43,620 bases of DNA from NCBI RefSeq assembly GCF_001194135.2, contig NC_068994.1:54056698-54100317 (forward strand), read 5' to 3'. This document shows positions 3,356 to 29,310 of this stretch, piece after piece. Made by a program: the position numbers and the translations under genes. How positions within the stretch are numbered: the stretch's first letter is position 1; every line of letters begins with the position of its first letter. This DNA comes from Octopus bimaculoides (taxonomy: Eukaryota). The notes beneath the pieces were generated by a model. That model did not search any database, had not been told where the DNA came from, and was given only the letters and a program-made list of their open reading frames with translations.

Positions 3356-3945
3356 ATTTGGGTTATTCCCCTCCCTCCCCACCAGCCTCTTCCTAGTTAT
3401 TTTTGCTATGCTCCATATATGTTGTGTGTGTTAGCAACAGCAGCTTACCTGTATGTAAGATATCGTGATTGGTGGTGGGGGAGCGGAAAGGGGGATTTAA
3501 TTGGATTACTTTCAGATATAACACCAAGTAGCCTAGCCCTCCCCCCCGTATTGTTTTTGATTTTTTTTTTGTGTGTGTGTTTATTTTGTTACACATACAG
3601 AAGAAAGAATGTGGAGTTTTTTTTTATGAGGAATTTACTGAAATTAGAGAGTTTGAAAATGATACTCCAGACCAGAATTTACTACTGTTCGTGAACCTCT
3701 AGAAATGGGGACCCTGATAAGGTTTCGGATTGCCAGCTTACAGGCCCCTGTGTTTCTCCTGTGTGACTTGGATCATCTGTTGGTAAATGTTGAATCGATT
3801 GGCATCACCTGCATGCAAACATTTTTGTCTCACAGCATTAATTTAATGCTATAGAAAATGGGGTTACATTGCATTGTACAGAACCCTGTGTTTTATCAAC
3901 ATTGTTGATCTTATGTCTGTTTTTCCATGCCGGCATGGGTTAGAT

Positions 3946-4200
3946 CAGTAGTTCTCAACCAATTTTTGCATATGGACTCCTTTGATTCCTGTTTTATTCT
4001 GTTTGACCCCGCTAAACATTTCGGTGTTTATAAAAAGCCTTTTTTTCATTATAATTAAATATTAATCGCAATTGTATAAAAAGTGGTTATTAAATAGTTT
4101 GTGTTGTATAACTAATTTATTGCAGATGAATTTTAACAAAACCTCGTGTGGATCCCAAAGGGCCATATGGATCTCCAGGGTCATATGGGCCCCAGTTGAA
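3946..4200. mobile_element. hAT/Charlie (MER5-like) non-autonomous element remnant
   Basis: Left end cagtagttctcaacc resembles the CAGTGGTTCTCAAC hAT-Charlie TIR; right end ggccccagttgaa is truncated. Confidence 0.45.
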
Positions 4201-4406
4201 TCCAATAATTATCAAGTATTTTAGAAGAAAGAAAGGAAAAAAGAATGTGATTTATCTATATATATAAAACAGAGTTTGTGTGTGTGTGTGTGTGTATGTT
4301 CCTTATGGATTCGAAAACTGAGTTGCCGATTTTGACATACGAGGCATCAAAAGAGTCAGTAATTTTTCGGTTACCAAATAAAGTATCCTAGTATTATACA
4401 AATTCT

Positions 4407-4635
4407 TTAAGCCTTTTGTTGTTATATTTCTGTTGAAATACACAATTTTTATTTCAATTAATTTTGGATATAGTGAATAATTTAGTAAAATGACTTTATC
4501 ATTATTAAGCTGCCTGATTGGAGCATAATTTTGATGTAATTTTGATGTAAGGTTTTGATTTAGATCACTTAAAATTAGGACATTTGTATCACACAACCAG
4601 TGGTGGTCTCAGATGGGCTGTCATTAAAAGGGTTA
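4407..4635. mobile_element. Second putative TTAA-type MITE family
   Basis: Degenerate ends ttaagcctttt ... aaaagggttag; internal homology (atatttctgttgaaatac..caattaattttg..gaatttagtaaaat) to about 7975-8190. Confidence 0.5.
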
Positions 4636-5644
4636 GTGCAGATTTCATTGCAGTAGTTGATTCTTGTGATTGTCTGTCCCCAGGTCAGGCCTAATTGAGC
4701 ATTCCAGCCATGACCATCCTCATAGTTTTTCCAGCAATAATGTACTCTAGAATACTTTATCTTATATCTTCCTTTTAGAGACAGTGGAGTGTAGTTTGCA
4801 AGGTATTTGGCTGCTATTTCTAGCAGGTTGAGAAACCGTGTAGAGACTTACTCTCTACTTGGCTATCAGTGATCTCTGTTTGCTTGGTTTGGTTCATAGC
4901 TCTCAATTTAAGCCAGAACATACCATATATATTTATATTCCTTTCCTAAAAGACTGGGATTTATTTCTGAAACTGTGCAGTTGTGGGTGGCAAGATTAAA
5001 AGTAGCGTATCGGGCTTTGTTAACATGACAATATAAACCATCGACATCTGGCCCCAAAGGATTAATTTTGGGCAATGCAAGTTGTTACCTGTATTTATAA
5101 GGGATTCGTTTATCTGGGGTTGCTGCATAGAGAAATAAAAGAAAAGAAAGATGAAGATTAGATTTTTTTTTCCCTGTAATTTTTTCATATTGTTAAGAGG
5201 ATGAGAGAAATCTCCCTGGGATGGGACGGAGGTGTAATTTATTGCACAGGAAATTACCAGGGAAGCTTGCTGTCTGTTGTTGATGTGATATAGACAATAA
5301 AATTGTGTTTTCTAATTCTGCAAACACTTATATTAATTTCCTACAAATTACATATATGTATGTATCTATACATACATATATATATAAACGCACACACACA
5401 AAGTCCACTTTGCTGGGTGGTTGGTGTTAGGAAGGGCATCCAGCCCCCCCCCCCAAAAAAAAAATCCGTCCAAAACAGACACAGAAGTCTGGTGCAAGCT
5501 TCTGCCTGGCCAGCACTGAAGGTGGACGCTAAACAATGATGATGATGATGATATATATATATAATATACATATAAATCATTTTGTTTTATCTCATATCTC
5601 TTAAAGTTTCTAAATAAAAATAATAGTTCTTATAATGTAAACAA

Positions 5645-5654
5645 NNNNNNNNNN
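5645..5654. other. Assembly gap (10 N) flanked by an exact 159-bp duplication
   Basis: 5409-5567 is identical to 5655-5813, including homopolymer lengths. Confidence 0.95.
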
Positions 5655-5882
5655 TTTGCTGGGTGGTTGGTGTTAGGAAGGGCATCCAGCCCCCCCCCCC
5701 AAAAAAAAAATCCGTCCAAAACAGACACAGAAGTCTGGTGCAAGCTTCTGCCTGGCCAGCACTGAAGGTGGACGCTAAACAATGATGATGATGATGATAT
5801 ATATATATAATATCAAATGTGTGTAAAATATATTTGTTTTCCTTTTCTTTTTACCAGTTGTGGGTTTTGGGTATTTTTCCTT

Positions 5883-5958
5883 ATGGATCTTCAGTACCAA
5901 GTTGGCAAAGTGACTCATGTCATTGACCCCAGCAACATTTGGCTACAGCTGTCAACAG
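5883..5958 (+). CDS. Tudor/MIF4G gene, first coding exon (MDLQYQVGKVTHVIDPSNIWLQLST); acceptor at 5857 implies an upstream exon
   Basis: Polypyrimidine tract + CAG at 5855-5857, donor GTTGGT at 5959. VTHVIDPSNIWLQ matches the N-terminal strand of extended Tudor domains. The ATG choice is inferred because the frame is also open upstream to 5858. Confidence 0.8.
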
Positions 5959-7765
5959 GTTGGTCATTATTGTCTCATTTAATCTAATACCTGTTATTAT
6001 CATTGCGACTTTGTGTGTGTATGTTTGTACCTGTGTGTGTGTGCATGTATACATATATGTTTGTGTGTTCTTTGCTTAAAATCTACTTTAGTCATTTTAT
6101 CTTAAAACTTTTCTACTATAATAAGGTGAATTTAATTGAAGGAAAAAAAGTGTGTGTGTGTGTATTGATTCAACATTGGTCAGAGAACGAGAGAAATGTG
6201 TCGTCTGTTAAGTAGTAATGTTTTAGTTGTTTGTTTGTGTCTGTTTTTATTTGCTGGTAAGTCACGTGGTCTTTTAAGGCTTTAACAGGAAAAGAAAAGA
6301 GAAATAGAAATGGCTTTCTTGTGTTTGTTTTATGAAAATGAATGTCGATCGAAAGTTTGTTTAAATCAGACAACATATGTTTGTGCTACGACTTGCTTTA
6401 TTTTCATTTCTGAGTTTCTTACGTTGCTTAAATGTTTGTTTAAAAAAAATATGGAAGGATGGCATCAGTAAAAATGTATTAAATTACATTTGAGAAATGA
6501 ACTTGTTAAAACCATACATTGAATAGATCTGTCCATTGTCACGTCTTCCAAGCACCCTTGACATGGTTACTCAGCCTGCCAGAAATAAATCAAATCCTTT
6601 TTGAATCTCATCCTATTGTATGAGAGGAGGACATAACTGGGTAATGTGGTCCTCTTTTGCCTGTTTATAGGGAAAAGACTGGGTGGTCTTTGTTGGATTG
6701 CCTTTGATCATTGCTTTGCCGAATCAATGTTGGTCTGTGATGAAATTTGTTTGTCCATCATTGTTGATGACGACCAAGGATATCACACGGGGAAAGAAAG
6801 ACTAAGCATTTTGCCCAGCGTGCTAACGCTTCTGCCATATCTGTGCCTATGTATCTGATAATTGGAAATTATTTTCCTTTTGTTGATAGCCGTATGACCA
6901 AATCCTTTACACTTGGCAAGCATTTTATTAGTTTATAGAGACAAGAGTGGCCATTTGCTGGAGCTGACTTGACCATGGTGCATTAATGAGGAGATGTCCT
7001 CAGTGTTGTCTCTACAAGATTGGGAGCCACCATTATTTGCAAACATTCTAATGACTCTTTGTTGAAAAATGGTGAATCCTTATTTTGCTGAGAAAAATGA
7101 AAAACTTTGTGTCCAAAGATCTTTTGATTTCTTATGAAATTATTGATGTTCATCACCATCTTGTTTTCAGAATTTCTATTTTATATTTGGGTTTAGTGAA
7201 GTTAACGAAAATCTTCATTTTTGAAGATCTGTTATCTCTTAAGAAATCATTGAAAATTTTTGTTATCCTCTTCGTCATTTATCAAATTTCTTTGTTTTTC
7301 CAGTTGAGTTTTGCGAACTTGAAACTGACATCCAAAAGTGTTTCCACAATGAAAAACCCGCCACACAAATCGGCATGGTCCAGCCCGAGCAGTTTGTTAT
7401 TGCATATAGCTCTTCAGTTGAGAAATGGTTACGAGCTCGCATCTCAAGGGTTATGGGGTCAGTTGTCCAATTTTTTTATCCTTATCTCTTTCATTTTCTC
7501 TCTCTTCCTCTCTCTCTCACATGTAAAATACAGAGTTCACGTGTTTTTTTGAAGATCTCATTTGTAACCACATCTTGTAAACTCCATTGCTGATATCTTA
7601 TTCGTTTCTTCCAGAGAAAAAGCTGATTTATTTTACTTGGACTATGGGTTTGCTGAGCAACGACCACTCAATAGAATATCAACTGAATTTCCTCCACGTT
7701 TCAGTGAACTAAACGCCCAAGCATTGCATTGTAGATTGTATGGTATTGAACCTGTGAGTTTACAG

Positions 7766-7808
<43 letters not shown>

Positions 7809-10800
7809 AAAAAAAAATTTAATCCTGTTAGTCCCGTCAGAACTATTTTGTTTCCCATGTCTGGATACCCAACCACCAAATAATTGAACAAGTTTGTTTG
7901 TTTGATGGATTACCTGAGCGTCTGCTTGGATATCTGAGAGGCTACGAATGCTAGAAAGTACCTAATTGCTTTCAGTTAATAGTTTCAGTTGATTTTGAAA
8001 ATAATGGAGAATTTAGTTGGAATACACTGGCTTTAAAAATGAAGAATTTAGTAAAATAAACCCTTTTGTCATATTTCTGTTGAAATACATTGCCTGTGTT
8101 CCAATTAATTTTGAAAATAAGAATTTTGTGAAACAATTTTGCCATTATTAATCTGGTGTTTTGGTACATAAATTAACATGCAGTTTTGATGCTGGGAGCC
8201 AGTCAGTCTGTTTTTATGTTCTGAGTTAAAATTCCGCCGAGGTCAACTTTGCTTTTCATCCTTTCAGAGTCGATAAATTAAGTACCAGTTGCATACTGCG
8301 GTCAATCTAATCGACTGGCCCCCTCCCCAAAAATTTTGGGTCTTGTGCCTAGAGTAGAAAAGAATTGCTGTCGAGGCAAAGGCAGTGAACTGGCAGAAAC
8401 CGTAGCAAGCCAGGGGAAATGCTTAGAGGCATTTCGTCTGTCTTTACGTTCTGAGTTCAAATTCTGCCGAGGTCAACTTTGCTTTTCATCCTTTTGGAGG
8501 TGATAAATTAAGTACCAGTTGCATACTGGGGTCGATTTAATTGATTGGGCCCCCTCCCCCAAAATTTTAGGCCTTGTACCTAGAGTAGAAAAGAGTATAT
8601 AATATGGCAGAAAAGAAAATGGAATGATCAGAGTTGTGGAGTTTTGGTCTCTCTTATGCCAAAGGCCAACTAAAAAAAGACTACATCAGCAACAACAACC
8701 ACCACCATGACATTCGTAGAAATTATATTTAGTATTTTGAGTGTTACTTACATTGATTTGCTCCTTTTCATTCCAAGTGATTTGGGTTTTGTGATGTCTA
8801 ACTGTATTGTTGGTTTTCTTTCCAGCTGGCCCCACCATCATGGATAAACCGTGCCGGGAAAGTACTGAGTAATGTGGTTTCTGGACAAAATTTTTACGTA
8901 TTCTTCCATTGTTCCTCAGTTGGCAAATATGTTGTTTCACTCTACAATTAGTAAGTATTACCCCCTCCCCACCTCACCCCAACCCCAACCACTGAAACGA
9001 ATTGTTCTGTTTATAATCCTTTTGTAGTACTATTTCTAATGAAACACACGGGCGAAATGCTCAGCAGGATTTCGTCTGTCCCTGGCAACTGGTGTCTACA
9101 TATTCCTTTATTCTTTTATTCTTTTACTTGTTTCAGTCATTTGACTGTGGCCATGATGGAGCACTGCCTTTAGTTGAACAAATCGACCCCAGGACTTATT
9201 CTTTGTAAGCCTGGTACTTATTCTATTGGTCTCTTTTTCCCGAACTGCTAAGTTACGAGGTCATAAACACACCAACATTGGTTGTCAAGTGATGGTGGTG
9301 AGACAAACACAAGCACATACACAAATATATGCATATATGTATACATATGATGGGCTTCTTTCAGTTTCCGTCTACCAAATCCACTCACAATATGTTTACA
9401 CGACAGGCTTCTTTCAGTTTCCATCTACCAAATCCAATGTGCTGTAATTTCAATTGTTATATTGTTTACTGGATTTATCACATGAGTGAGACGAAATTAC
9501 TGGCAAGAGATGAGATGTGTAAACGAATCAGCTGCTCTCAACATTCTGCAAAGAGTTTTGCCACCGAAACCACTTTTTTTAAAGGGTAACGACAAAACAT
9601 TCTAGAAACTCCATCATGCTAAAACTTCATGCTGACCACGTGAAACTATTGTGGTACACTCGTGATGTCTGATCGCATATCTAATGATTTGGTTTCAAAT
9701 CACCGCTACAACCCGTTTTCAAAGAATCTTTTTAATTAAAATATTTCCTTTATTTTTATTTTTTAATTACAGTCAAACCCAGCGCAGTGTCATCCATGAA
9801 TTGTTGGAGTCTGAAGTTTGTAAAGTAAGTACTGAATTGTATTTGATTTTCCTACTTTGTGTTTTGCCATTCTTACAGCTTAGGTAAACTTAGCCAGTGC
9901 ATTTAGTCTCATAGTCAAGGACACAGTGAAACTGTTGAGAAATCAGCAATTTGTTGATTTACATGATTGTGACTCATTCAAATTATATTTCTGTGTCCTG
10001 TTGCCAACTGGATTCATTACAAAATTTTAGAGCAGAAAGTGCCTGGTCATAATTTTGCTCATTTGAACGAGACTGAATGTCTATGAATGTCTAACTTTTT
10101 ATTAACTGACATAGTTTGTTCAGATTGCATATGTTTGATAGAGTAACTCTTCCACTTTACAAAAGTTTCTACTCAACATAGTCTCTGTCACAAGTGATAC
10201 ATTTACACCATCTTTGGACCCAACTCTCAAATCTTCTTTGAAGAAAATTCAGATGTGAACTGTTGTACCCACTTCTTCATAGCTGTTTTCACCTTGTCTG
10301 TGTCATTAAATCATTATCCCTAAAGACTGTCCTTCATCAAATCAAACTGGCACCAGCTTCTGGTTGTTCAGTGGATGGGGAACCACTGACCAATGTAATT
10401 TGCTGATTGCTTGGTCTATTGACCAAGACGTATGTGGTCCTGCATTGTCCTGGTGAATGTGGATCATTGTCAGCCTCTTATTCCATCTCTTCCTCCTAAT
10501 GGCTTCTCTAAGCTTTTCAAGTGTCTCAGGGGACCACTTACTGTTCACAGGACAATCACATTCCAGGAAATCAAGTAAAAATGACCCTTGCTGTGTCTAT
10601 TATGATATCCCCTGACCATTACTGTGTCCATTATGGTCAGCTAGAGTGTGATGCTAAGTGTAATTTATTCTTTCAGCCTGATGGGGAAGTTCCTATTGCA
10701 GAATATATTGCCTCTCCATCTAGTAAGTATCATTTTTACTTTTTCAGTCATGCTCTATTTTTGTCAATTTTCACTTCACTGATTTTGCATTTTTCATTTC

Positions 10801-13800
10801 TTCCATTTTATTTCTTTTTTATTTATTTATATATATATATTTTTTTCTTTTTAGTACCATACAACAATGACAATCGAGGTTTTCCTGCAGACCATTTCCA
10901 CGCACCTAAAGCCTATTCTAAAGTGGCCGATACATGCAAATCTGAAGATTTTGATGCAGTTTCAAATAGCCGGCACCCTCACACTGGCATACACATTGAC
11001 GACAAGAATTACTGGAATCAAACGCGAATTCCAAGTGCTGACCTCTCGGTGTTTGATGCGACGTCGGAACTGACTCCTGAGAAACTTGCCAACATGGACA
11101 AAATGCATCAGTTCCAGAAAGCTCAGCAGGAGGTTCAGAACCTTTTCAGTCACAATGCTGACTATATGTTCGCTTCAAATAGTGAGTGTAAGTTTAAGAT
11201 TTTGTTGTTTTCGACAGAAATTTAATCAGTGAAACTGCAGCCTTTTATGAAGCAAAATTTTGATTCGTTAAGAAATTCCTGGTGTGTGTTTGTATATGCA
11301 TGTGTATGCATATTTGTGTATGTATATGTATGTGTATACATATTATGTTTGTGTGTGTGTGCATATATGTATGTTTACATTTGTGCTTTTGCAAAAATCC
11401 CTTCCTCTATCAACATGCCATCTTCTGGCTTTGTGCCTTTGAAGTTGTTGTGATGGTATTATCCCTAGAGGCCTTCCTGTATCAGGAGGGCCACATCTCT
11501 ATCATCCTCTCTACTCCTTTTTTTAAAAAAATCTTTGTATGCTAAGCATATGTCCCTTTTTCAATGTATACCGTGTATACTTACTGTCCCTTTTTGTAAT
11601 CATTTCATTATATGTAAATCCCCACACTTTTTGTGTTTGTATTGTCCTTCTTATCATTCACCCTTGTGGCAAATAAATGAAATCATCATCATCATTATTA
11701 TCATTGTTATTGTTGTTGTTGTTATTGCAGGTTCTCTCGACTGTAACTATTCTAACAGCAAGACACTCTCAGAGGTAATGAATGATGTCCAAAGCCAGAT
11801 TCAGGAATTGTATACGGACAAGAAGTTTCAAACGGAGAATAATAATCCAAGAAATCTACGTTAGTAGCAGCTTTCCTTTATTACTTCAAAACCCTTTTCG
11901 TTTGACGCCTAAGTATGTGCTTTAACAACAGACGATAAAATATCTTCCCACAAGATGTATATGGTTTTTACATTACATCTCTGGAATGTTCCAGCAATAT
12001 GTAGAGGGCTAGTTATGGGTAAGAGCAATGATGTCCTTGGATAAAATCTAGGTGTCAACAAGGATGAACTGGCTGATCTATTCAGGAAAACTTTCTGGCT
12101 AGGGACTGCTATGGATAACTTCCAGATATCCTTGACTTGCAACGCTACTGAGCAGGGGCACTGCTGGTTTGAGCTGAACTATACAGGCTGAGGGGTGCTG
12201 CTATATGGAACTGTCCAAGATGAGATCACAGCAACAAAACTGTACTGCTTGCATTTGTGTAGTCTCTGAGCATTGCTGACTTGTGGACATGAATGGTTGG
12301 TGTTGCTTGTAACCTGGACCTGGCTGTCAGCCAACCCCATCAAGAAGATTGCTTTGCTGCCTTCATTTTATAAGTTTGGGCAGGCTGTTTCCTTGTTTCT
12401 GGTTTCTGGTGGATGATGTTGAAAGGGTTGAGGTAAGACCCTTTCCTCCTCACTCAGTCCCTCATTCAGATTTACAAGTTCTACTTGGAAAGGAAAGTAA
12501 GAATGGAGAGGGAAGGGCTCTCCACCAGTGAATCTGTCAAACGGTAGGGGGTGACTGATGAAGTTGCTTTGAGTGAATAGAAATACTCTCAGCATTTGCC
12601 TGTAGATAGAACATCAGTTGGGTGAAGGTTTGTACCCTTGATGATCAGGGTAATCTTGAATCTGTGGAGTTCCTTCATTGGCCCTGGTTGGAGGCTCTCC
12701 TGCATCAGGATTACGTCATACATGTATTCGTATTCAAATTTGGTATACTATGTATACATTTTATTCCATTCCCCCCCCCCCTTTTTTTTACATCACCTAA
12801 TTTTATGTAAACTTCATGTAAACTTACCTGTCTTATAAGGATTTTTCGTCTTGCCCCACCGAAAATTAAAGGCACCAAACTGATGGAATCATTGAATCAT
12901 TTGCATGTTGGACAAAATGTGTCTTGCAGTATTTCTTCCAATACTTTATGTTCTGGGTTCAAATTCTGTGAAGGTCAGTTTTGCCCTCCATCCGTTCAGG
13001 AATTGATAAAATTAGAACTGGTTGAGCACTGGGGGGATTGATGTAACTGGTTTACTCTTCCTTCTAACAACTGCTGGTCTTGTGCCAAAATTTGAAACCA
13101 TTATTATTATTATTATTAATATTATTATTATTATTGTTATTAATTAATTAATCTATTTATTTTTCTGTAGCATCAACTCGGTTTGATTCAACTCCTATAT
13201 CACATCCACCAGCACGGAGTCAGGATATTTGGACAACTAAGACCCGTTCGGTGCCTCCTGGTTTCCAACCTCTCGGTTCTACTGAAACCTCAAACAACTG
13301 TCCTCGGAGAAATTTCGATGACTTCACTACTTGGAGCCCATCATTCGAACCTCGGTATGTTAAGACGACGCAGTTTGAACAGAAAGTCGTGTTGTTGATA
13401 TTGTTGTTTTTGTCATCTTGTAGACCTCAGGACTCAATGGTAAGTTATTGAGGCAAGTGCTAAACCCATCATATATAGGCCTACATCATTAGATGGGTAT
13501 CCCTCATCATCATTTAATGTTTGTCTTCCATAGGATCCAATCAGCATCGAGGTCCAGTGTTGCTTTGACATGGTTTCTGCAGTTGGCTGCCCTTTCTAAT
13601 GCCAGCACCCCCTTTACAGCATGTATGGGTACTTTTTTTTTTTTTTTTTTTTTGCACGACACCAGCGCTAGTGAGGTTGCCAAGTAACTTGCGAGACAAA
13701 AAATGACTTCCTTGACTAAATACAGTTGTTGTAGAGAGGAAAGCTTCATGTTGGATGTTGAGAAGCTAAAGTACGACAGAGGGACAGATACCGGTGTCTT

Positions 13801-15847
13801 GTCCCCTGTTAAAATTGGTTCAGTTTTTTCGTAACTAAGAGACTGAAGTTAAATAATAATTTTTTTCCTCACCAACTTCTCTTTACTTTCAGCCAACAAC
13901 CATCGTTAAGTCCAAACTATTTGAAGCTGGTGAAACCTAGTACTGTATTGGTGCCACCTTCAATGTTCAACAGTTGTTCAAAGACGGAACCACCAAAACC
14001 TAATTTACCCAGGTAAACCCCGTCAAATTCTTTTCTTCACACATATTTCTTTTTCAGCTGAGGCGTTTCCAACATGATGGGTTCCTTCTGCTTACTGCTC
14101 TTGTTAATAAATGCTTGATTAGTTTCTTATAATAATTATGTATAGATATTAAATTTCATCATCATCATCATCATTTAACGTCAATGCTGGCATGTGTTAT
14201 TAACTAATGTATATTTCTGATAGGGTGATGAGCTGGCAGAATTCTTAGCACGCCAGGCAAAATGCATTTCAACATTTTGTCTGTTTTTATATTCTGAGTT
14301 CAAATTCCACTGGGATTGACTTTGCTTTTCATCCTTCTGGGGGTCAATAAAATAAGTACTAGTGGAACCCTGGGGGTTGATGTAATTGACATATCTCCTC
14401 TCCTGAAATTACTGGCTTTGTGCTAAAATTTGAAGCCAATATATATATATATATGATAAACTTATATTCATGTACAAGCATGGATGTGTGGTTAAGAAGT
14501 ATGCTTTACAACCACGTAGTTTCAGGTTCAATTCTACCATGTGACACCTTAAGCTAGTATCTTCTATAGCTCTGAGATTTGAGGGTGATTTGGTAGATAG
14601 AAACTGTTGTGTGTGTATAAGTATATTTAAAAAAAATTCCAACAAATTAAAAAAAAATATACTATAAGGAAATAATGATTAAAAAATTTTTCTTAATTTT
14701 TGTAGGAATAACTGGTCAACTTCATGGGGATCAAATTGCAGCCATTCTGTAATTGATACTAATTTAACAGAATTAGCTCAGAAACTCCAGCAGGTAAGAT
14801 GTCTTATTTTTGTGAATTGTTTCTTGAATAAGGTCTCTATGTTTAAATTGTAACTTAAAGATGGTGGTTGGTGCAATTATTAGATTAATATTATTAGAAT
14901 GTTGTTACTATTGTTCCTGCTGTAGCTATTGTTGTTAAAGCGTTGAGCTGCATCATTCAGAAGTTCCATGGTTCCCAAAATTCACCAGCATTAATTCTGA
15001 CATGCCCCTGCACCACCACCATCATCATTTAACATCTGTTGTCCATGCTGGCATGGGTTGGACGGTTTGACCAGGGCTAGTAAGCTGGAAGGCTGTACCA
15101 GATTCCAGTCTGTTTTGGCATGGTTTTCTGCAGCTGGATGCCCTTCCTAACGCCAACCACTCCGAGAGTGTAATGGGTTCTTTTACGTGCCACTGACACG
15201 GGTGCCATTTGTGCGACACCAGTATCTGCCACAACTCTAATTTTACTTGGCCTGATGGGTCTTCTTTGCAAGCACGACATAATGCCAAAGGTCTCGGTCA
15301 TTGCTTCCGTGAGGCCCAACACTTGAAAGGAACTTGGCCACTTTGCCTCTGTGAGGCCCACTGCTTGAAAGGAACTTGACTACTTTGCCTCTGTGAGGCC
15401 CACTGCTTGAAAGGAACTTGACCACTTTGCCTCTGTGAGGCCCAACATGACTCTTTTTTGTCTTATTGCATTTTATTCTGCACACTCTGCGTATATCTCT
15501 TGCTATCATTGCCATTTTTCTTTACTTGCATGTCTGTTTTCCATTCCCTCTTTTAACCTTTTCTGACCAGTCGTAGTGCACCTGAACACTACATGCAATT
15601 AGTTCGTTATTATATTGTTAATTGCCATCTTATTGTCTTTATTCTTCTCGGTGTTATTTCAGGTCCTTCCTTCAGCTCATTCCAATGTACACTGGCCACA
15701 GCTCTACTGGGAAATGGATCAGCTCTTCCTTGATTTCAGTAACTCTTCTCATACTTTTACCTTTCATGTGAAACGCTTGTATTAATGTTGACACATTTCG
15801 TTTGTCTCTGTTTCTGCCTTCATCCCAAATGAGTTTCCAAGAGAATA

Positions 15848-15897
<50 letters not shown>

Positions 15898-17870
15898 TGT
15901 GTGTGTGTGTGTGCATGTGCATGTGTTTTTGTTTGAATGCATGTGACCATTGTAGACAAGTGTTGCCATCATACAAGCAGCGTCTTTTGTTTCTAATCTT
16001 GTGTGAAAACATGTCTGGTCATGGGGAAGACGTTAAACGATGATAATGATGATTAGAAACTGGTGAGGGTTGGCAGTAGGAAGAGCACCAATGAGAAAAT
16101 CTACCCTCAGTGAATTGTGTTTCACATATACAATAATGGAGAAGTGAATGTTAAAACAATGGTGAATTTATATTTATGTGTGTGTACATGTACAGTATGT
16201 ATGTATGGTACGTACGCATGTGTGTATGGTACATATGTATGTATGGTATGTGTGCCTGTTTCTCAACTGGGAAAATGTTTTCTACTGTAGCTGACCAAAG
16301 CTTTGTGAGTGTGTTTGGTAGCTGGAAACAGAAGCCCATCATGTGTGTCTCCTTGTCTTGACGTGTGATTTTTTTTGTCAATGAATGTCATTCATTTCCA
16401 ATATTCTGCAAAAGCCAATTCTGGTTATGGGGAAATTATTTTGCTTAGAAAGAGGTGAAGGTTGGCAACAAGGAGGGCATGAAACCATGCCAAAGCAGAC
16501 ATATGATCACAATTCAGTCCTGGGATTCTATCAACCCTACATACTTATATTAACATGGGACATTTACGTTAAATGATGATGTTGATGCATACATCTAGAC
16601 ACACATATATGCATATATACTCTGTACAGCTGTGTCTAACGCTCACAGTTGTACAGAGTAAATATCAAATAGTCATCTTCACTCCTAGTTATATCATGGC
16701 ACTCCGTTGGTGACGACGACGAGGGTTCCAAGTGATCTAATCAACGGAACAGCCTGCTCGTGAAATTAACGAGCACTCTACAAACATTTGTACCCTTAGC
16801 GTAGTTCTTGGGGAGATTCAGCGTGACGAAGGGTGTGACAAGGCTGGTCCTTTGAAATACAGGAAGAAAGATTGAGAGAAAGAGTACAGAAGGGTTCGCC
16901 ACCACCTCCTGCTGGAGCCTCATGGAGATTTAGGTGTTTTTGCTTAATAAACACTCACAACGCCCGGTTTGGAAATTGAAACTGCGATCCTATGACCGCG
17001 AGTCCACTGCCCTAACCACTGGACCATTGCGCCTCCACCCTAGTTATATAATGTAGGCTGTAATATCAATATACAGAATACTTTATAGAACATGCATAAC
17101 ACAGTGACCTCCCTTCGTTGCCAAATGCAGCAGGTTGGTACATTGACTCGAGGAAATTTGAGGGTTAAATGCAGCAGACAAAATAGACATGCAGCTGTTG
17201 TTGCTAAACTCCATATTGGCAGACCTATCATGAAAGGGTTTCTAATTGGAACCAGCCCAATTTTTGTCTTTTTTCCCCTCCTAGTAAAGTGTACCTAAGA
17301 CTACATTTACCAATATGCTTTTTTTTTTTTTTTTTTTGAAAGGGTTGAGAGATTTGAGTGAGATTTTGTTACTATTTTTAGCAGGTGAAATGACTGCTTA
17401 AAGGTTTCTATATAGGCTCAATAGATGTGTAACCCCCACCCCGAAAAAAAAGACCCCAACACATTCAGAGTGCCAGATATGCACAATTGGTTTCAGTGGT
17501 TCCCACATTAGTATCTAAGATGTGTACTGCAGCATAAAAGCCATATTGCTTGTCTGAACTGTACTTCTTTCTTATTTATCGAAGACGTAATATAAGACTT
17601 CAGTTAATTGTTCCCTTTGATTTTGTTTCAGGAGAACTGTCCAGCACCCAGAAACTGAACCTTATTCTGAAGACCGTCTTAACACAAGCGATTCAAGAAC
17701 CCAACTTCTTTAATAATGCCATCACTCTAATATTTTATTTTCGAGGTGAGTTTCTTTAGAACATACTTCAAGAAAGACTATTTAACCTGATAAAGTAAAC
17801 TTTTAGCCTTTGCTCTCTCTCTCTCTCTCCAAACCACTTTCCTTCTGTGTCCTCTCCTTGTCTTGTCTAT

Positions 17871-17903
<33 letters not shown>

Positions 17904-20588
17904 AATGGAGTCTGATTTTCTAAATTTGATGGCCATATACCATTTCTAACGAAACCCTATCAGCCTCATGTCTTCTCTTCTCCTTACACTTACTGTTTCT
18001 CCCCTAGACCTTTCACTAACCTATTCCCCCTCCCCTCAATCCTTCTCCAGAACTGTCCGCTGAGTACATATTTCCATGGCACCAGCATTATAGAGGCTAA
18101 ATGAGTTTTCTTGTCCCTGTTTAATCTACCAGCCATTTTACAAAGTGATCTTTGTGCTTTTGTTTTTTGTTTTCATGGCACCACCATTAGAGAGGTCACC
18201 TTACAACTGAAAGGGAGACAGGGTGAGATAGAGAGAGAGAGAGAGTGAGGAGGGGAAGTGTAGCGGTGTGTTATACATGTTTTTAATTTGTCTTCTTTTC
18301 ATTTTCAGATCATAACAGTTTTGAGAATAGTCTGCGCACAACTATCACAGATTTAGAGATTGATCATATTAAGGTTGGTAATCTTTTTCTTATTTCTACT
18401 TTTAGAAAATATCAGACCTGAATGGTGTATTTTTCTATGAAACCCTACCTTTTGTTAGGTCTTCATTTTAAAATTACTTAAAAATTCAAGTAGCATTTTT
18501 GTTTGTTTTTTCTTTTGTTCTTTGTATTTTACCGTTGTGACAAAATACCAAGCACAATTCCTTCTTATATGGTGTGCGTTTTGTAAAGTTGTAGTTAACT
18601 GGAATGCTTCGGATATCAAACACAAGTCAATGAGCAAAATACTCCTTCGATGTGTTTCCTGCTCATTAAAACTGCACACATCTATATTTAATACTTTCAT
18701 TATCATTTTTCTGTTGAAAGACAAGTGCCGGCATGACTGTGCAGTAAGAAGTTTGATGATGATGATGATGATCCTGCCACTTCATTGTATTTGTCTTTGT
18801 AATAATTCCGTCCAAAACTTACACTATTGTTGTTGTTGTTGCTTACCAGCCGGAAAGTTTGACTGCTGAGACCTTTGCAGACCTGTTGGGCCATATTTTT
18901 GTTGAAATCTGCTCCCGAAACTCTCAGTAAGACAACTTTATTCATCTGTTTTCATTTTTAATATTTTCATTTGGATTCTTTTTCTCTCATTATACCTGGT
19001 TGCTTGAAGCCACTGACATTTTGCATGAGGCTCTACATGGTAACATGAAGCTATTGAAAATAAATAAATAAATAAATTAATTAATAATAATAATAATAAT
19101 ACAAATCATCTTTTCTACTATAGGCACAAGGCCTGAAATTTTAGGGGTGGGGGCTAATCGATTACATTGACCCTAATGCATAACTGGTACTTATTTCATC
19201 AATCTCTTTTTTTTTTCTCTTCCTGTCTTTTCTTTCAGAAGATGTTCTTTCACACCATTTAGGACAATTCTCACCAAATGGTTGAACTTCTCCAATGTAA
19301 GTTGAAGCATATTTTGGTATTACTATTGAATGCTGGGGAATGTTTATTGTATTTTATTCTTACAAAACTTATTGTTTTTATGTTGGAATTACTGGACCAC
19401 ATTCCATCCCATATTTTTCTTTCAAACAGTGTATTTAGCACTATGCTATTGAATATGACTCTCTTCTTATTTTATAGTCATCTGAGTATGATTTGAAGGA
19501 GGTTAGACTGCTATTTCTAGCAGAGAAAGCAACCTTGTTGGTTTACTGTTTTAGTGTTGTTCTTTACCCCTACTGCATCATGGACATCATTGTCATCATT
19601 TTTACATCTGCTTTTCCATACTTGCTTGATGGAATTTGTCAAATCATATTTTCTATAGCTGGATGCTCTTGCTGTCATTAAACCTCACCTGTTTCCAAGC
19701 AAGCAGGGATGTGCCGCCTGGCAAGGTAGACAGTGCCTATCCTGAATGAAATAGATCGATACCAACATTTTCCTTTTATGGCAAAATATGCATATAATTC
19801 AATAAAACTATGAAGGTGATTCTGATTATTATGCATAAAATACAAAATATTTTATTTTTTGTAGATTAAGTGGCTGCTGTTTCTAGTTAGGCTTACAAAG
19901 AATAAGTTGTGGGGGTGATTTCTTCAACTAAAAAACCCTTCAAGGCTCTGCTTCAGCATGGCCACAGTCAAAAGAATAAAAGAGAGGAAGAAAAAAGCCA
20001 AAATCAGAGTAAATTTCTTAACTCTTGGATTTCAAATTTAAATGATTTATTTTTCTCTCTTTTCTCTTTTTTCTTCTTTTTGCAGCCCAACAATTCTCCA
20101 CAAAGTGACTGTCATTTGTGTAATCTCTACCAGCATTCATTCCTCGATTTTTGGACAGTTGCTGGTCTCAGTTGTTTGCAGAATCTGTCTTCAGAATTCA
20201 CGGGTTTTCTCAGGAGAGAGATGAAGTCAATGATCCTTAGTACCAGTGTGGAATTGTAAGTAAAGAAAATACATTAAAATGGAATAGTTTTGGTGAAGTG
20301 TTGTGTGATGTTACTTTTAAGAGACTAATTGTGCAAGGTTGGAACAATGCGAGAGGATATAGAGTCAACAACAAAAGGAAAAACAAAACATAGTGGAATG
20401 TTTATGAATTGGCATCCGAGATTTTAATAGAAGACTTACATAAACACACACACACGCATGTATGAGACAAAGAGCTGTAGGCCGTCTGACAGAACCCAAA
20501 CCCTGTCTATCACATTACATGTGTATTTGTTGCATTCTGTTCATGTTTATAATGTTACACACACACACACATGCACATAAAATGTGCA

Positions 20589-20674
<86 letters not shown>

Positions 20675-23122
20675 CATATGTGTGTGTCTTAAGGAGAATT
20701 CAAAGAGGTCCAACATCATCATCATCATTGTCGTTTGACGTCCGCTTTTCATGCTAGCATGGGTTGGACGATTTAATTGAGGACTGGTGAAACTAGATGG
20801 CAACACCAGGCTCCAATCTGATTTGGCAGAGTTTCTACAGCTGGATGCCCTTCCTAACGCCAACCACTCCGAGAGTGTAGTGGGTGCTTTTGGATTGATG
20901 TATATCAGTTCATAAATATACCAATGTATCAGTCATTAAAATATTAAAACACATAAAAAATCTATGAGTACATAAATATATAAAAAAATTAATATACATT
21001 TATAGATAAATGAATGGGATTAAGTTATAAAAGTGTAGATGTGGGCAATGTGTAGATGTGTATACAATACACAAAGAAATCTTACTATATATATATCAGT
21101 GAATCATTTTATATATCTTATTCAATGTGTGTCTATTAATTCCTTTTCTTTTTTTTCCCATCAAAGTGCGGTGCGGTCAAGGTTGTTTTCCATCTTTGTG
21201 GAACAAGAACAGATGCTGTACAGTCAGGAACAGAAATCAGTTCAAACAGTTGGAGTCCAGACAGACATTCCAACTGTACCAGAAAAGGCTGATATTGGTA
21301 GGTAAACCCCAGCACAATGATTCCATTCACTAATCGTGGTTCCTTCAGTCCTCCTCTTCTCCCAAATTCATTACTGGTATACTTGCTATACCCATGAGTT
21401 GTTTAAGATGGTATTGTAGTACGCCATTCTGGAGCTGTTGTCTTCCTGCAACATGCTGTAAATGTTGTTATTGTGCAGTAGCAACCACAGACCCTCCCTG
21501 AACATACAGACCTGTTGTAGGTAAGTAGTCATCCGAACAATCAGATACATTGCTTCCCAGTCATTTGATCATGGATTCAGTCCCACTGTGTGGCCCCTTC
21601 GTTAAGTGTCTTCTAGTGTAGCCTCAGGTTGACCAAAGCCTTGTAAGTGGATTTGGCACATAGAAATTGGAAGGAGCTCAACGTGTGTGTATGTGTGTGT
21701 ACTCATGGTTGTATATATATATTTGATATTTGTAACTGAAAACAAAACTGAAAAATGCAATTCCTGTAAATGTTTATACTTCATAAACACTTCCATTTTC
21801 TTATATTCTTTCTTCTTTTCCGTTCTTTTATTACAGATCCTGTGCAATTGTCACCTGATCACAATATTCCAATGTACCAGCAGAATGGAGACACGTCAGC
21901 TGTTGATTCCTGGACCCAGCCTAATTTCTCTGAGCCAGCAGACATCATTGACAACGTGGAGCCAGATTATAACTCCAGCCAAAATGCGCCTTTAGAACAT
22001 CAGTTCAGTGCCCTTTACAGCAGGGATAACCCAGCCTCCCCTCCTCTGACTCCGCCATTGGATTCAACTCGATGTTGTTCAACTGAACTCTTACAATCGT
22101 CTGAGTTTCCATGTGCTGCTTCGCCTCCGCGGTCAGCATCACCAGAACCAGAACCAGAGCCGGAAGAAGAGAACGACTCCCCACCTCTCAACTCTGATGA
22201 TTTGGAGGTCCTGCCAGAGAGGGTCTCTCACCAGGAGAAATATCTCTCACAACGGTACAGTTCCGATTTGGAATTGAAACGACCGTCTGCGATGTCTCTG
22301 AACTTGTTTGAACCTTACTTCCTTGAAAAGACCCTTGAGTCAGCATCGGCCCCTTGTCCCTCTCCACCTCAACCACCTCCTCAAATCGAAGAAGAAAAAG
22401 AACTACCCAACATGGTAGAAGAGGTCGAGGAGAAACAAGCAAATTCAGAATTGTTGCGAGGGAGCTATGCTGCTCGAGTGGCTGATTCATCTGGTGATGG
22501 CCCTAATAGGAATGCCAACAGCCGGACTTCCAACCGAAATAATCCATTATTTGACTATCCCGATGATCACATTGCTGCTATACGAAATAATGCTAGGGAT
22601 ATCGGTAATGGCAAAATTCGATTTGTTGCTAAGCGACTGGTTCCTGAGAAAGGGACCACAGTTATGAACACGTCCTGCAATTATGAACTACGGGGTAAAA
22701 AAAATGGCACTTTCCCATCTTTCTCCTCTACTAATGCGACACCCTTAACTTCCTCTTGTGTGTCCTCACAAACTTCAAAAGGAAGGGCTTCTTCTAGCAC
22801 TAAAAAGACACTGTCAGGGAACAAGCCTGCTAGCAATATGTCACAGGAGCACATGACAAAGTCAGTGCATCTCTCTAGTTTACGCACAAATTCGGAATCA
22901 GACACACGAACTTCCACTGCCGATGTTAGGTATGCGAACACAGATGCCAAAGCTGGCAGCATGCACTCTCAGCCCGAGCCCAGCTTGAAGCTGAATTCAC
23001 GGTCAGTGGGTAGGACTCAAAGTTGTAGTCAGGAAATACCGTGTTACCAGTGTACTATATGTGGTAGGGAAGGGCATCAGAGTCACCAATGCCCCAACCA
23101 TTCCAAGTATTTTTTTATGTAA
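5883..23122 (+). CDS. Multi-exon gene for an ~1138-aa protein: extended Tudor + MIF4G-like HEAT + C-terminal CCHC zinc knuckle (putative RNA/translation regulator)
   Basis: Hand-spliced exons: 5883-5958, 7304-7457, 7615-7753, 8826-8950, 9773-9824, 10677-10722, 10855-11181, 11731-11859, 13171-13354, 13893-14012, 14706-14793, 15663-15738, 17632-17745, 18309-18373, 18850-18926, 19239-19296, 20086-20255, 21167-21297, 21837-23122. All 18 introns are GT-AG with matching phases; the total is 3417 nt with no internal stop. Domain calls come from motif recognition, not a database search. Confidence 0.85.
7304..7457 (+). CDS. Tudor/MIF4G gene exon, Tudor core (VEFCELETDIQKCFHNEKPATQIGMVQPEQFVIAYSSSVEKWLRARISRVMG)
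   Basis: ttttccag acceptor, gtcagt donor, phase 1 to 2; Tudor W-x-RA motif. Confidence 0.88.
7615..7753 (+). CDS. Tudor/MIF4G gene exon, Tudor core (EKADLFYLDYGFAEQRPLNRISTEFPPRFSELNAQALHCRLYGIEP)
   Basis: FYLDYG and QALHCRLYGIEP are typical extended-Tudor motifs; ttcttccag acceptor, gtgagt donor. Confidence 0.92.
7767..7802. repeat. (TC)n microsatellite
   Basis: Direct reading. Confidence 0.95.
8208..8597 (+). mobile_element. Head-to-tail dimer of tRNA-derived SINE family A
   Basis: Two copies (about 8208-8366 and 8381-8597) with B-box-like gagttcaaattc and body gtcaactttgcttttcatcctttc..gataaattaagtaccag. Other copies at about 12930-13110, 14225-14440, 37985-38200 and 40200-40390. Confidence 0.85.
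8826..8950 (+). CDS. Tudor/MIF4G gene exon, C-terminal flank of the extended Tudor (LAPPSWINRAGKVLSNVVSGQNFYVFFHCSSVGKYVVSLYN)
   Basis: tttctttccag acceptor, gtaagt donor, phase 0 to 2; W-x3-A helix typical of the SN-like flank. Confidence 0.85.
9100..9430 (-). mobile_element. SINE family B/C copy in intron 4 of the Tudor gene
   Basis: Reverse complement of the 29316-29650 type. Confidence 0.82.
9773..9824 (+). CDS. Tudor/MIF4G gene exon (QTQRSVIHELLESEVCK)
   Basis: ttacag acceptor, gtaagt donor, phase 2 to 0; fits the S-V/I-x2-L-L helix that ends extended Tudor domains. Confidence 0.82.
10145..10640 (-). mobile_element. Degenerate mariner (DD34D-type) transposase fragment in intron 5 of the Tudor gene
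   Basis: Minus-strand translation shows FLLDFLE..VNS..ETLEKLREAIRRKR..IHQDNAGPHT..LHWSVVPHP and a C-terminal QRWCKCITCDRDYVE*, broken by stops and frameshifts. These are typical mariner/SETMAR-type motifs. Confidence 0.88.
10677..10722 (+). CDS. Tudor/MIF4G gene exon (PDGEVPIAEYIASPS)
   Basis: ttctttcag acceptor, gtaagt donor; this exon is needed to bridge phase 0 to phase 1. Confidence 0.78.
10855..11181 (+). CDS. Tudor/MIF4G gene exon, disordered linker (PYNNDNRGFP...YMFASN); alternative donor at 11187
   Basis: 327-nt open, GC-richer exon; tttttag acceptor; gtgagt and gtaagt tandem donors. Confidence 0.85.
11731..11859 (+). CDS. Tudor/MIF4G gene exon (SLDCNYSNSKTLSEVMNDVQSQIQELYTDKKFQTENNNPRNL)
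   Basis: ttgcag acceptor, gttagt donor, phase 1 to 1, open frame. Confidence 0.8.
12350..12740 (-). mobile_element. Possible very old LINE APE-endonuclease remnant
   Basis: Minus frames give YDVILMQES (cf. DVIxLQET) and a degenerate ..HHP segment; heavily decayed. Confidence 0.35.
13171..13354 (+). CDS. Tudor/MIF4G gene exon, Ser/Thr/Pro-rich linker containing VPPGFQ
   Basis: ttctgtag acceptor, gtatgt donor, phase 1 to 2. Confidence 0.8.
13893..14012 (+). CDS. Tudor/MIF4G gene exon (QQPSLSPNYLKLVKPSTVLVPPSMFNSCSKTEPPKPNLP)
   Basis: tttactttcag acceptor, gtaaac donor, phase 2 to 2. Confidence 0.78.
14706..14793 (+). CDS. Tudor/MIF4G gene exon (NNWSTSWGSNCSHSVIDTNLTELAQKLQQ)
   Basis: tttttgtag acceptor, gtaaga donor, phase 2 to 0. 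Confidence 0.82.
15309..15445 (+). repeat. 42-bp minisatellite, about 3.2 units, expanded from a SINE-D body
   Basis: Unit gtgaggcccactgcttgaaaggaacttgaccactttgcctct starts at 15309, 15351, 15393 and 15435; a single related copy lies at about 37340-37375. Confidence 0.92.
15663..15738 (+). CDS. Tudor/MIF4G gene exon (VLPSAHSNVHWPQLYWEMDQLFLDF)
   Basis: ttatttcag acceptor; donor gtaact chosen because it gives the phase 1 needed by the next exon. The donor is weaker than most. Confidence 0.7.
15851..15912. repeat. (GT)n microsatellite
   Basis: Direct reading. Confidence 0.95.
16695..17038 (-). mobile_element. tRNA-derived SINE family E
   Basis: Minus strand begins gtggaggcgcaatggtccagtggttagggcagtggactcgcggtcataggatcgcagtttcaatt (A- and B-box-like) followed by a non-tRNA body; a fragment recurs at about 25060-25180. 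Confidence 0.75.
17632..17745 (+). CDS. Tudor/MIF4G gene exon, MIF4G-like helix pair (ELSSTQKLNLILKTVLTQAIQEPNFFNNAITLIFYFR)
   Basis: Only one frame is open; ttgtttcag acceptor, gtgagt donor. AIQEPNF resembles the eIF4G MIF4G segment KAISEPNF (recalled sequence). Confidence 0.85.
17871..17903. repeat. (TAC)n microsatellite
   Basis: Direct reading. Confidence 0.95.
18309..18373 (+). CDS. Tudor/MIF4G gene exon (DHNSFENSLRTTITDLEIDHIK); alternative donor at 18377
   Basis: cattttcag acceptor, phase 1 to 0. Confidence 0.8.
18850..18926 (+). CDS. Tudor/MIF4G gene exon (PESLTAETFADLLGHIFVEICSRNS)
   Basis: ttaccag acceptor, gtaaga donor; LLGHIF sits where MIF4G domains have FIGELF. Confidence 0.8.
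19239..19296 (+). CDS. Tudor/MIF4G gene exon (RCSFTPFRTILTKWLNFSN)
   Basis: Long pyrimidine tract + CAG, gtaagt donor, phase 2 to 0. Confidence 0.82.
20086..20255 (+). CDS. Tudor/MIF4G gene exon (PNNSPQSDCHLCNLYQHSFLDFWTVAGLSCLQNLSSEFTGFLRREMKSMILSTSVE)
   Basis: Strong acceptor tttttgcag, gtaagt donor, phase 0 to 2. Confidence 0.85.
20591..20670. repeat. Compound (TG)n(TA)n microsatellite
   Basis: Direct reading. Confidence 0.95.
20713..20891 (-). mobile_element. SINE family D copy
   Basis: Near-identical to 2322-2523 and 42269-42390. Confidence 0.85.
21167..21297 (+). CDS. Tudor/MIF4G gene exon (AVRSRLFSIFVEQEQMLYSQEQKSVQTVGVQTDIPTVPEKADI)
   Basis: Pyrimidine tract + AAG, gtaggt donor, phase 2 to 1; VRSRLFSIF matches the last MIF4G helix. 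Confidence 0.8.
21837..23122 (+). CDS. Tudor/MIF4G gene terminal exon: ~420-aa Ser/Pro/Glu-rich disordered region ending in a CCHC zinc knuckle
   Basis: Longest ORF in the window (21770-23122); ttattacag acceptor at 21836; CTICGREGHQSHQC (C-x2-C-x4-H-x4-C) at 23051-23092; TAA stop. Confidence 0.92.
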
Positions 23123-24615: not shown

Positions 24616-24659
<44 letters not shown>

Positions 24660-24661
<2 letters not shown>

Positions 24662-24834
24662 GCACGTAAAAAGCACCCACTACACTCTTGGAGTGGTTGG
24701 CATTAGGAAGAGCATCCAACTGTAGAAATCATGCCAAATCAGATTGGAGCCTGGTGCAGCCTCCTGGTCTGCCAGTCTTCAGTCAAACCGTCCAACCCAT
24801 GCCAGCATGGAAAGCAGACGTTAAACGATGATGA
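24660..24834 (+). mobile_element. SINE family D copy ending in gacgttaaacgatgatga
   Basis: Reverse complement of the 2322-2523 type copies. Confidence 0.85.
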
Positions 24835-29089: not shown

Positions 29090-29310
29090 TAATAATGGTT
29101 TCAAATTTTGCCTCAAGGGCAGCAATTTTGCGGGAGGAGACGAGTCAATTACATCGACCCCAGTGTTTCTCTAGTACTTAATTTATCAACCCCCCGAAAA
29201 GATGAAAGGCAAAGTTGACCTCAGCAGAATTTGAACACAGAACGTAAAAGTCAGAAGAAATGCTGCTTAGCATTTTGTCTGACATCCTAATGATTCCACC
29301 TTATATATTT
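29090..29310 (-). mobile_element. SINE family A copy
   Basis: Reverse complement of the family A pattern; abuts the family B/C copy at 29316. Confidence 0.8.

Follow-up and report, generated by a model that had tools for sequence, protein, structure and literature searches.

An octopus gene that joins an extended Tudor domain, a predicted MIF4G-like fold and a C-terminal CCHC knuckle

A gene of Octopus bimaculoides raises the question whether a single protein combines an extended Tudor domain, a MIF4G-like domain and a CCHC zinc knuckle, and what such a protein might do. The gene lies at 5883-23122 of a stretch of 43,620 nucleotides (nt) of contig NC_068994.1 (positions 54,056,698 to 54,100,317 of the forward strand), hereafter the window, from whose first letter all coordinates are counted. 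An earlier reading of the letters alone (the original prediction) had proposed this three-part architecture for one open reading frame (ORF) of about 1138 amino acids (aa) spliced from 19 exons. We find that the encoded protein is laid out as an extended Tudor domain (aa 1-182), a linker (aa 183-465), a ten-helix domain (aa ~466-700) that probably has a MIF4G-type fold, a low-complexity region (aa 701-1105) and, in the last 23 residues, a zinc-knuckle-shaped element with a short tail.

Exact spliced alignment of a database protein (P0002) to the window placed 19 exons on the + strand between 5883 and 23122, with a spliced total of 3417 nt coding for 1138 aa. Every intron is GT-AG and all junctions are phase-consistent. 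The window translation equals P0002 with no differences, from the ATG at 5883 to the stop codon at 23120-23122. Exon count, length and outer coordinates of the original prediction were thereby reproduced, and the only two exons above 300 nt, as it had remarked, are exon 7 (327 nt) and exon 19 (1286 nt). The idea of an undescribed gene has to be narrowed: P0002 is isoform X3 of LOC106867702 (XP_014768148.1), a RefSeq "uncharacterized protein", and UniProt entry A0A0L8I099, "CCHC-type domain-containing protein", so that the gene model was already public in both databases as an uncharacterised protein. P0002 and a relative of 1142 aa, P0003, were retrieved with a profile built from the last exon and one relative (alignment A3), run against 1.84 billion representative proteins, in which they scored 813 and 471 bits respectively.

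Ab initio exon chaining from splice-site and codon scores yielded a rough model of 23 exons, which has the boundaries 5883, 14706, 21297 and 23122 in common with the original prediction. Compared with the P0002 map, 13 of the 19 exons were exact (1-3, 5, 7, 9-11, 13-15, 17 and 18) and the last was right save for the stop codon. One boundary was wrong in exons 6, 8, 16 and the last, the acceptor wrongly taken for exon 6 being 10551, while exons 4 and 12 were missed. The five remaining ab initio exons (9137-9204, 12840-12973, 13534-13683, 16689-16731 and 19478-19501) were rejected as false, the first two sitting in window-internal repeats. The complete gene model hence rests on the match to a database protein and not on the ab initio predictor. 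No convincing coding exon was found upstream, in 1-5882, and the ortholog mRNA, in which an in-frame stop precedes an equivalently placed ATG, shows that the protein starts just ahead of the Tudor domain. The sole upstream stretch with a mildly positive coding score (11.6) is a Ser-rich segment at 102-248 (+), which could be a 5′ untranslated region (UTR) exon, part of another gene or noise. The annotated isoforms differ through small alternative splice events. Isoforms X1 and X2 use an alternative donor at 11187, 6 nt past the one at 11181, and so gain EC after aa 307, and R592 is absent in isoform X2 and in UniProt A0A0L8HZ32. To judge from this isoform difference, a tandem NAGNAG-type acceptor 3 nt downstream of 19239 would explain the loss of R592.

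Do the three parts lie on a single transcript? The Octopus sinensis ortholog (LOC115218864) is 98% identical to P0002, and P0003 is 38% identical with the domain order unchanged. The P0003 ORF runs uninterrupted through intron-less contigs of 3.8-4.4 kb assembled from four SRA runs, which carry a 5′ UTR with an in-frame stop before the ATG and a 3′ UTR as well. Since they are intron-less and have both UTRs, these contigs are mRNA assemblies; one transcript of that species thus carries everything from the Tudor domain to the knuckle, linker and helical domain included. The original prediction had asked for a check on whether the Tudor and MIF4G halves belong to separate transcripts, and for the ortholog, at least, the answer is one mRNA. 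By region, P0002 and P0003 are 65% identical in the Tudor domain, 61% in knuckle and tail, 36% in the MIF4G-like domain and 30-35% in the linkers, the latter with near-identical islands.

Genomic comparison pointed the same way. A second locus, L001, on a 543-kb ENA contig, was reached through P0001, an ORF fragment with homology to the last exon. In translated comparison with the window, seven conserved blocks of L001 line up in collinear order ahead of the last exon, and for eight consecutive exons (12-19, 15663-23122) acceptor, donor and codon phase match between the two loci. P0003 is 72-75% identical to the products of L001. Given the exon boundaries and phases kept in L001 and the intron-less ortholog P0003, the gene model is far beyond chance. 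The shared exon structure, together with 65% identity in the Tudor domain versus 36% elsewhere, suggests that P0003 and L001 come from another, distant cephalopod. The A3 scan, made with the fast-evolving last exon, returned the Octopus cluster, the P0003 cluster and an unrelated multi-knuckle protein (P0004) only; the family thus appears, as far as this analysis reached, in cephalopod-like sequences only. A word-indexed protein search returned P0001 alone for the last exon and nothing for the Tudor plus middle domain or for the middle domain at E <= 10. It missed the window's own protein, its O. sinensis ortholog and P0003, all of which belong to the collection and have long exact words in common with the queries, and its silence was not counted as absence of homologs. 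At about 11175-11200 of L001, just before the knuckle, a one-base frame shift makes the called ORF P0001 stop early, where P0003 reads through; it is probably an assembly indel and less likely a real lineage-specific truncation.

The extended Tudor domain is the best-conserved part of the protein and is spread over the first five exons. Exon 1 (5883-5958, aa 1-25) holds the start codon and the first Tudor β-strand, GKVTHVIDPSNIW; exon 2 (7304-7457, aa 26-76) the Tudor helix and core strands 1-2; exon 3 (7615-7753, aa 77-123) core strands 3-4; exon 4 (8826-8950, aa 124-164) the SN-like C-terminal part (LAPPSWINRAGK...VVSLYN), strongly conserved in P0003; and exon 5 (9773-9824, aa 165-182) the end of the domain. 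Pfam PF00567 matched well above its cutoff of 23 in both the octopus protein (55.1 bits, E=1e-14) and P0003 (51.4 bits, E=1.4e-13). Against PDB, a two-species profile of aa 1-197 (A7) aligned its positions 12-153 with residues 38-179 of TDRD1 (5m9n_A, E=3e-6), thus reaching about octopus aa 148; further matches were Bombyx mori Papi, Drosophila Papi, human TDRKH, Tudor-SN and SND1. The alignments to TDRD1 and Papi/TDRKH place SN-like flanks on both sides of the core, as in an extended Tudor domain. This part of the original prediction is accordingly confirmed, with TDRD1, Papi/TDRKH and SND1 as relatives of solved structure. The likeness covers the N-terminal strand, the helix, the core and the start of the SN-like part; unlike TDRD1, TDRKH and SND1, the octopus protein has no KH, MYND or nuclease domain.

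The octopus domain also differs from these relatives in its cage. Residue alignments to 2wac, 5m9n, 5vqg and 2o4x revealed that the dimethyl-arginine cage is incomplete: the template F (of AQF), Y (of WYRA) and N/D (of DYGN/DYGD) correspond to S61, L68 and F89 in the octopus protein and to S, V and Y in P0003 (WVRA, DYGY). In motif form, AQF has become AYS, WYRA has become WLRA or WVRA, and DYGN/DYGD has become DYGF or DYGY; in the window the replacements are read in KWLRA (7423-7437, exon 2) for the canonical WYRA and in LDYGF (7637-7651, exon 3) for DYGN. Only Y84 and Y87 of FYLDY are retained. Since the Asn and two cage aromatics out of four are replaced, the domain probably docks its partner without need of symmetric dimethyl-arginine. 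Classical binding to methylated PIWI tails appears unlikely, and the degenerate cage argues against the symmetric-dimethyl-arginine reading that the original prediction had implied for PIWI. Cage-less extended Tudor domains bind partners without arginine methylation, or outside the cage.

We then come to the helical domain, which is encoded by exons 11-18 (14706-21297). Exon 11 (14706-14793, aa 451-480) contributes the first predicted helix, VIDTNLTELAQKLQQ, equivalent to residues 15-30 of the AlphaFold2 model. One MIF4G-like helix each falls in exon 12 (15663-15738, aa 481-505, with the weak donor TCA/gtaact), exon 14 (18309-18373, aa 544-565), exon 15 (18850-18926, aa 566-590) and exon 16 (19239-19296, aa 591-610). 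Several helices are found in exon 13 (17632-17745, aa 506-543), which includes AIQEPNF at 17688-17708, and in exon 17 (20086-20255, aa 611-666); the last long helix, AVRSRLFSIFVEQEQ..., is in exon 18 (21167-21297, aa 667-710). AlphaFold2 predicted ten helices for the octopus domain from a 2-sequence alignment (predicted local distance difference test, pLDDT, 77.1; predicted template-modelling score, pTM, 0.73) and again for the P0003 domain from a 3-sequence alignment (pLDDT 76.1, pTM 0.70). In both models the ten helices superpose on solved MIF4G domains, whose fold consists of five HEAT-like hairpins, ten helices over ~230 aa.

With Foldseek, the octopus model matched PAIP1 (target template-modelling score, TMt, 0.60/0.58), the CNOT1 MIF4G domain (0.60), yeast eIF4G (0.54), DAP5 (0.52) and Gle1. 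The P0003 model matched eIF4GII (1hu3; query score, TMq, 0.59, TMt 0.67, root-mean-square deviation 4.3), yeast eIF4G (0.57), DAP5 (E=7e-3), PAIP1, UPF2 MIF4G-2 and CNOT1. All matches of the octopus model with probability 1.00 and a template-modelling (TM) score of at least 0.45 were MIF4G domains, Gle1 being counted as MIF4G-like, and non-MIF4G matches (ZER1/ZYG11B, 14-3-3, CSN4) remained near TM 0.3. In the P0003 search, Wapl, importin-beta, FHOD1 and a designed repeat protein reached TMq 0.35-0.44, below the best MIF4G domains (0.5-0.67).

Sequence comparison and the quality of the models weigh against this assignment. Pfam gave no MIF4G match (PF02854) at E <= 10 for the isolated domain of both species or for the full proteins, and the ortholog profile had 0 matches among PDB sequences at E <= 10. 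Likewise hhalign against eIF4G1/eIF4GII/DAP5 attained probabilities of 4.8% and 2.8% over 25 columns, both models were built on shallow alignments of 2-3 sequences, and the Foldseek E-values lie between 0.007 and 0.1, none being <= 0.001. In addition, BLASTP against the human eIF4G1 MIF4G domain was non-significant (E=0.31); the eIF4G1 sequence used agreed with 8huj_B over all 225 aligned residues. What hhalign aligned was just the helix around AIQEPNF (AISEPNF in eIF4G), the sole stretch that aligns to eIF4G by sequence. Taken together, the two predicted structures make a MIF4G-type fold probable. The label 'MIF4G-like fold' is justified, but the data do not place the domain in the MIF4G sequence family, and the MIF4G domain of the original prediction is to be retained in the sense of a HEAT-type fold modelled for the exons at 14706-21297.

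The third module closes exon 19 (21837-23122, aa 711-1138 and stop), which also encodes the low-complexity region with its conserved motifs. The element CTICGREGHQSHQC (aa 1116-1129, 23051-23092) has the spacing CX2CX4HX4C, and all four ligand residues are conserved in its counterparts, CTICGRDDHETHQC in P0003 and CTICGLEDHETHQC in L001. It is followed by the tail HSKYFFM (23099-23119), conserved as HSK(Y/S)FF(M/I) in P0003 and L001, and in both lineages 9 residues separate the knuckle from the C-terminus. On the strength of this conservation it is a genuine zinc-knuckle-shaped element. In spacing, and in the Gly after the second Cys, it resembles the CCHC RNA binders (retroviral nucleocapsid type; CNBP, LIN28, Vasa/GLH); it differs from them in being single, extremely C-terminal and followed by a conserved hydrophobic tail, and in having Thr-Ile and no aromatic between the first two Cys. 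Two observations speak against a standard RNA-binding knuckle: the octopus protein scores 17.2 bits with Pfam zf-CCHC (PF00098), under the cutoff of 20.8, and Thr replaces the usual aromatic after the first Cys. RNA binding is uncertain for these two reasons, and we regard it as plausible but not assured. The CCHC knuckle of the original prediction hence stands as a conserved C-terminal CX2CX4HX4C whose profile score falls under the Pfam cutoff. An origin of the present knuckle from a retroelement Gag was rejected: the long exon that it closes runs on without a break from conserved host motifs, and its position is equal in both lineages.

Between the domains, the linker at aa 183-465 and the region at aa 701-1105 are polar and 30-35% identical between the lineages (P0002 versus P0003). 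The first linker starts in exon 6 (10677-10722, aa 183-197) and continues through exon 7 (10855-11181, aa 198-306), exon 8 (11731-11859, aa 307-349), the S/T/P-rich exon 9 (13171-13354, aa 350-410) and exon 10 (13893-14012, aa 411-450). Within it three islands are near-identical: RIPSADLSVF..TPEK (aa 255-274; RIPSADLSVFDATSELTPEK, 11025-11084, exon 7), the helical motif KTLxEVMNxxxSQIQELY (aa 317-334, 11760-11813, exon 8) and VPPGF(Q/R)PLG (aa 377-385, 13251-13277, exon 9). The C-terminal islands, all in exon 19, are MSxNxFEPxFLEKTLE (aa 863-878, 22292-22339), RGSYAARVA (aa 918-926, 22457-22483) and KIRFVAKRLVPE (aa 970-981, 22613-22648). Conserved islands within divergent linkers form a pattern typical of scaffolds that use short linear motifs to contact several partners, and would suit such a protein here. 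GYF domains bind PPG-hydrophobic motifs, and HPat interacts with GIGYF through PPGF motifs (PMC6648886). VPPGF(Q/R)PLG is accordingly a candidate GYF ligand, possibly for GIGYF/4EHP repressor complexes, which we offer as a lead and not as a result.

What might such a protein do? By analogy with proteins of similar parts, it seems most likely, at about even odds, to be a multivalent scaffold or adaptor of cytoplasmic RNA-protein granules. In the mechanism that we propose, the Tudor domain would dock a protein partner, probably without symmetric dimethyl-arginine, while the MIF4G-like domain would offer a platform of the type that binds or regulates DEAD-box ATPases (eIF4A, DDX6, Dbp5, eIF4AIII), its partner perhaps being Vasa/DDX4, DDX6 or eIF4A. 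Short motifs and the knuckle could supply extra protein contacts and weak contacts with single-stranded RNA. This helicase-adaptor mechanism is put forward tentatively, as a possibility that falls somewhat short of an even chance, and it has against it that not all MIF4G domains bind a helicase. A more specific version, in which a cephalopod germ-granule or nuage scaffold would use a diverged MIF4G domain, not LOTUS, to recruit and activate Vasa or another DEAD-box protein, with a methylation-independent Tudor domain and an RNA-binding knuckle as tethers, is distinctly more doubtful. Were it true, it would represent an independent evolutionary route by which helicase activity and the control of translation are coupled to PIWI/Tudor granules.

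The nearest parallel is found in scaffolds that pair LOTUS with extended Tudor domains (TDRD5, TDRD7 and Drosophila Tejas/Tapas). MIF4G and eLOTUS are both listed as modulators of DEAD-box helicase cores (PMC12526068), and for LOTUS, binding to Vasa and stimulation of this helicase are known from TDRD5, TDRD7 and Oskar (PMC5458760). Because both modules act on DEAD-box proteins, the octopus architecture resembles the LOTUS-Tudor scaffolds, with the MIF4G-like domain as the putative helicase module: in each case a Tudor domain and a domain of the DEAD-box-regulator class share one polypeptide. The octopus module differs in having the HEAT-repeat MIF4G fold instead of the winged-helix LOTUS fold, next to a single Tudor domain with a degenerate cage and a terminal CCHC element. 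The parallel would be one of function only, with no sequence relationship outside the Tudor domain, and Pfam found no LOTUS/OST-HTH domain in P0002 or P0003.

Other explanations were weighed against this scaffold reading. It could be argued that annotation has wrongly fused two neighbours, a Tudor gene and a MIF4G/CCHC gene, into the 19-exon model, given that linker exons 6, 8, 9 and 10 are weakly coding by ab initio scoring and that L001 stops short of the Tudor half. In P0003, in contrast, a single ORF, present on four independently assembled contigs, extends from the Tudor domain through the linker motifs and the MIF4G-like domain to the knuckle, its mRNA keeps the linker motifs of exons 7, 8 and 9, and the junction phases are all consistent in the P0002 map; an artefact is thus extremely improbable. 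A more serious concern is that the helical domain might be a generic HEAT/ARM scaffold, used for self-association or for an unrelated partner, with no link to helicases or translation. Its MIF4G likeness would then be a consequence of short HEAT arrays all looking alike, and the protein a lineage-specific, fast-evolving Tudor scaffold. The throughout non-significant MIF4G sequence signal, the weak Foldseek E-values, the additional matches to ZER1/ZYG11B, Wapl, 14-3-3 and importins and the 36% identity of this domain between the two lineages would all fit. Against it, the top TM-scores (0.5-0.67) in both models belong to MIF4G domains of six families with probability 0.99-1.00, whereas other repeat proteins reach 0.44 or lower; ten helices over ~235 aa suit MIF4G, and an A-I-x-E-P-x-F helix of the eIF4G/PAIP1 type occurs at a like position (~residue 40 of 230). 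We consider a generic scaffold unlikely, although it is the strongest of these alternatives.

A different pathway can also be envisaged, namely a general and possibly somatic role in mRNA repression or decay instead of a PIWI or germ granule. The PPGF motif would recruit a repressor of the GIGYF-4EHP type and the MIF4G-like domain a DDX6-type helicase, while the Tudor domain would oligomerise or dock. Such a role would agree with the conservation of VPPGF(Q/R)PLG in an otherwise 30%-identical linker, with the GYF-ligand class of PPG-hydrophobic motifs and the use of PPGF between HPat and GIGYF (PMC6648886), with the presence of the CNOT1 MIF4G domain, a DDX6 binder, among the best fold matches, and with a degenerate cage that argues against classical PIWI binding. 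It has to contend with the nearest solved Tudor relatives being piRNA-pathway proteins (TDRD1, Papi/TDRKH) and with the weakness of a four-residue motif as evidence, and seems to us about as doubtful as the germ-granule version of the proposed mechanism. Slightly less probable still is that knuckle and hydrophobic tail serve to bind protein and not RNA, by comparison with CLIP-170, which also ends in a zinc knuckle and a tail. The element is near-terminal in both lineages and continues into the conserved HSK(Y/S)FF(M/I), it has no aromatic after the first Cys, and it falls below the zf-CCHC cutoff in the octopus protein; in P0003 Pfam gave no zf-CCHC match and listed CLIP1_ZNF alone, at a non-significant level (E=3.9, 7.9 bits). 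That lack of significance counts against the protein-binding role, as do the octopus tail, which is basic and hydrophobic, unlike the acidic EEY/F type, and the spacing CX2CX4HX4C, which together with a Gly behind the second Cys is that of a classical RNA-binding knuckle.

How new, then, is the architecture that underlies the preferred reading, a Tudor-MIF4G-knuckle scaffold? The octopus domain is like solved MIF4G domains in its ten-helix fold (TM 0.5-0.67 to 1hu3, 2vso_F, 4iul, 3rk6/6yxj, 4gml and 4cek) and has the A-I-x-E-P-x-F helix in common with eIF4G; it differs from the domains of eIF4G1/eIF4GII, DAP5, PAIP1, CNOT1, UPF2 and Gle1 in showing no Pfam or significant profile likeness. MA3, W2 and PABP- or eIF4E-binding modules were absent among the Pfam matches, linear motifs for them not having been searched systematically. 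To our knowledge, no member of the eIF4G, DAP5, PAIP1, CNOT1, UPF2 or Gle1 families has a Tudor domain preceding MIF4G. Full-text searches of the available literature found no characterised protein with Tudor and MIF4G domains (with or without a zinc knuckle), which bears out the original prediction on this point, and searches for the locus names, accessions and sequencing runs returned nothing. The apparently undescribed element is the MIF4G-fold domain, and through it the combination of all three parts, the Tudor domain and the CCHC element being detectable by standard tools.

Germ granules and piRNA factories owe their organisation to Tudor scaffolds, and the DEAD-box ATPases of translation, decay and export have MIF4G domains as their classic regulators. 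If the two are naturally fused in one protein, this would suggest that Tudor granules and DEAD-box regulation are wired together directly, and LOTUS would no longer be the only means of equipping a Tudor scaffold with a regulator of helicases. A blind spot also comes to light: a domain invisible to profile searches, in a protein labelled only "CCHC-type domain-containing protein", was exposed by structure prediction alone. In practical terms the gene is a concrete candidate for cephalopod germline or messenger ribonucleoprotein biology, and it has no bearing on a long-standing open question.

The window around the gene is AT-rich animal DNA, rich in microsatellites and dispersed repeats, and Rfam and tRNA scans of it gave no match. 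Dispersed repeats were located at 2319-2504, 3016-3356, 8203-8605, 14221-14442, 15014-15199, 20693-20891, 24659-24952, 29090-29653, 33725-33896, 37982-38201, 38919-39088 and 42270-42391. Each matches up to 5-9 other places of the window on both strands, several are intronic in the gene, and more than one family may be involved. Intron 5 carries, at 10339-10548 (-), a remnant ORF with a transposase-like 'HQDNAxPH' stretch, presumably Tc1/mariner-like, in which Pfam confirmed no transposase domain; a similar remnant lies at 15889-16266 of L001 (tblastn E=4.5e-4). Two assembly gaps (N runs) are present, at 5645-5654 and 41611-41691. The former is ~230 nt upstream of the ATG and inside a duplicated repeat (5409-5567 / 5655-5813), so that the 5′ UTR/promoter region is incompletely resolved in the assembly. 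Downstream, ~39590-39873 (+) is an exon of a separate gene, with a protease-associated (PA) domain (PF02225, E=1.7e-8).

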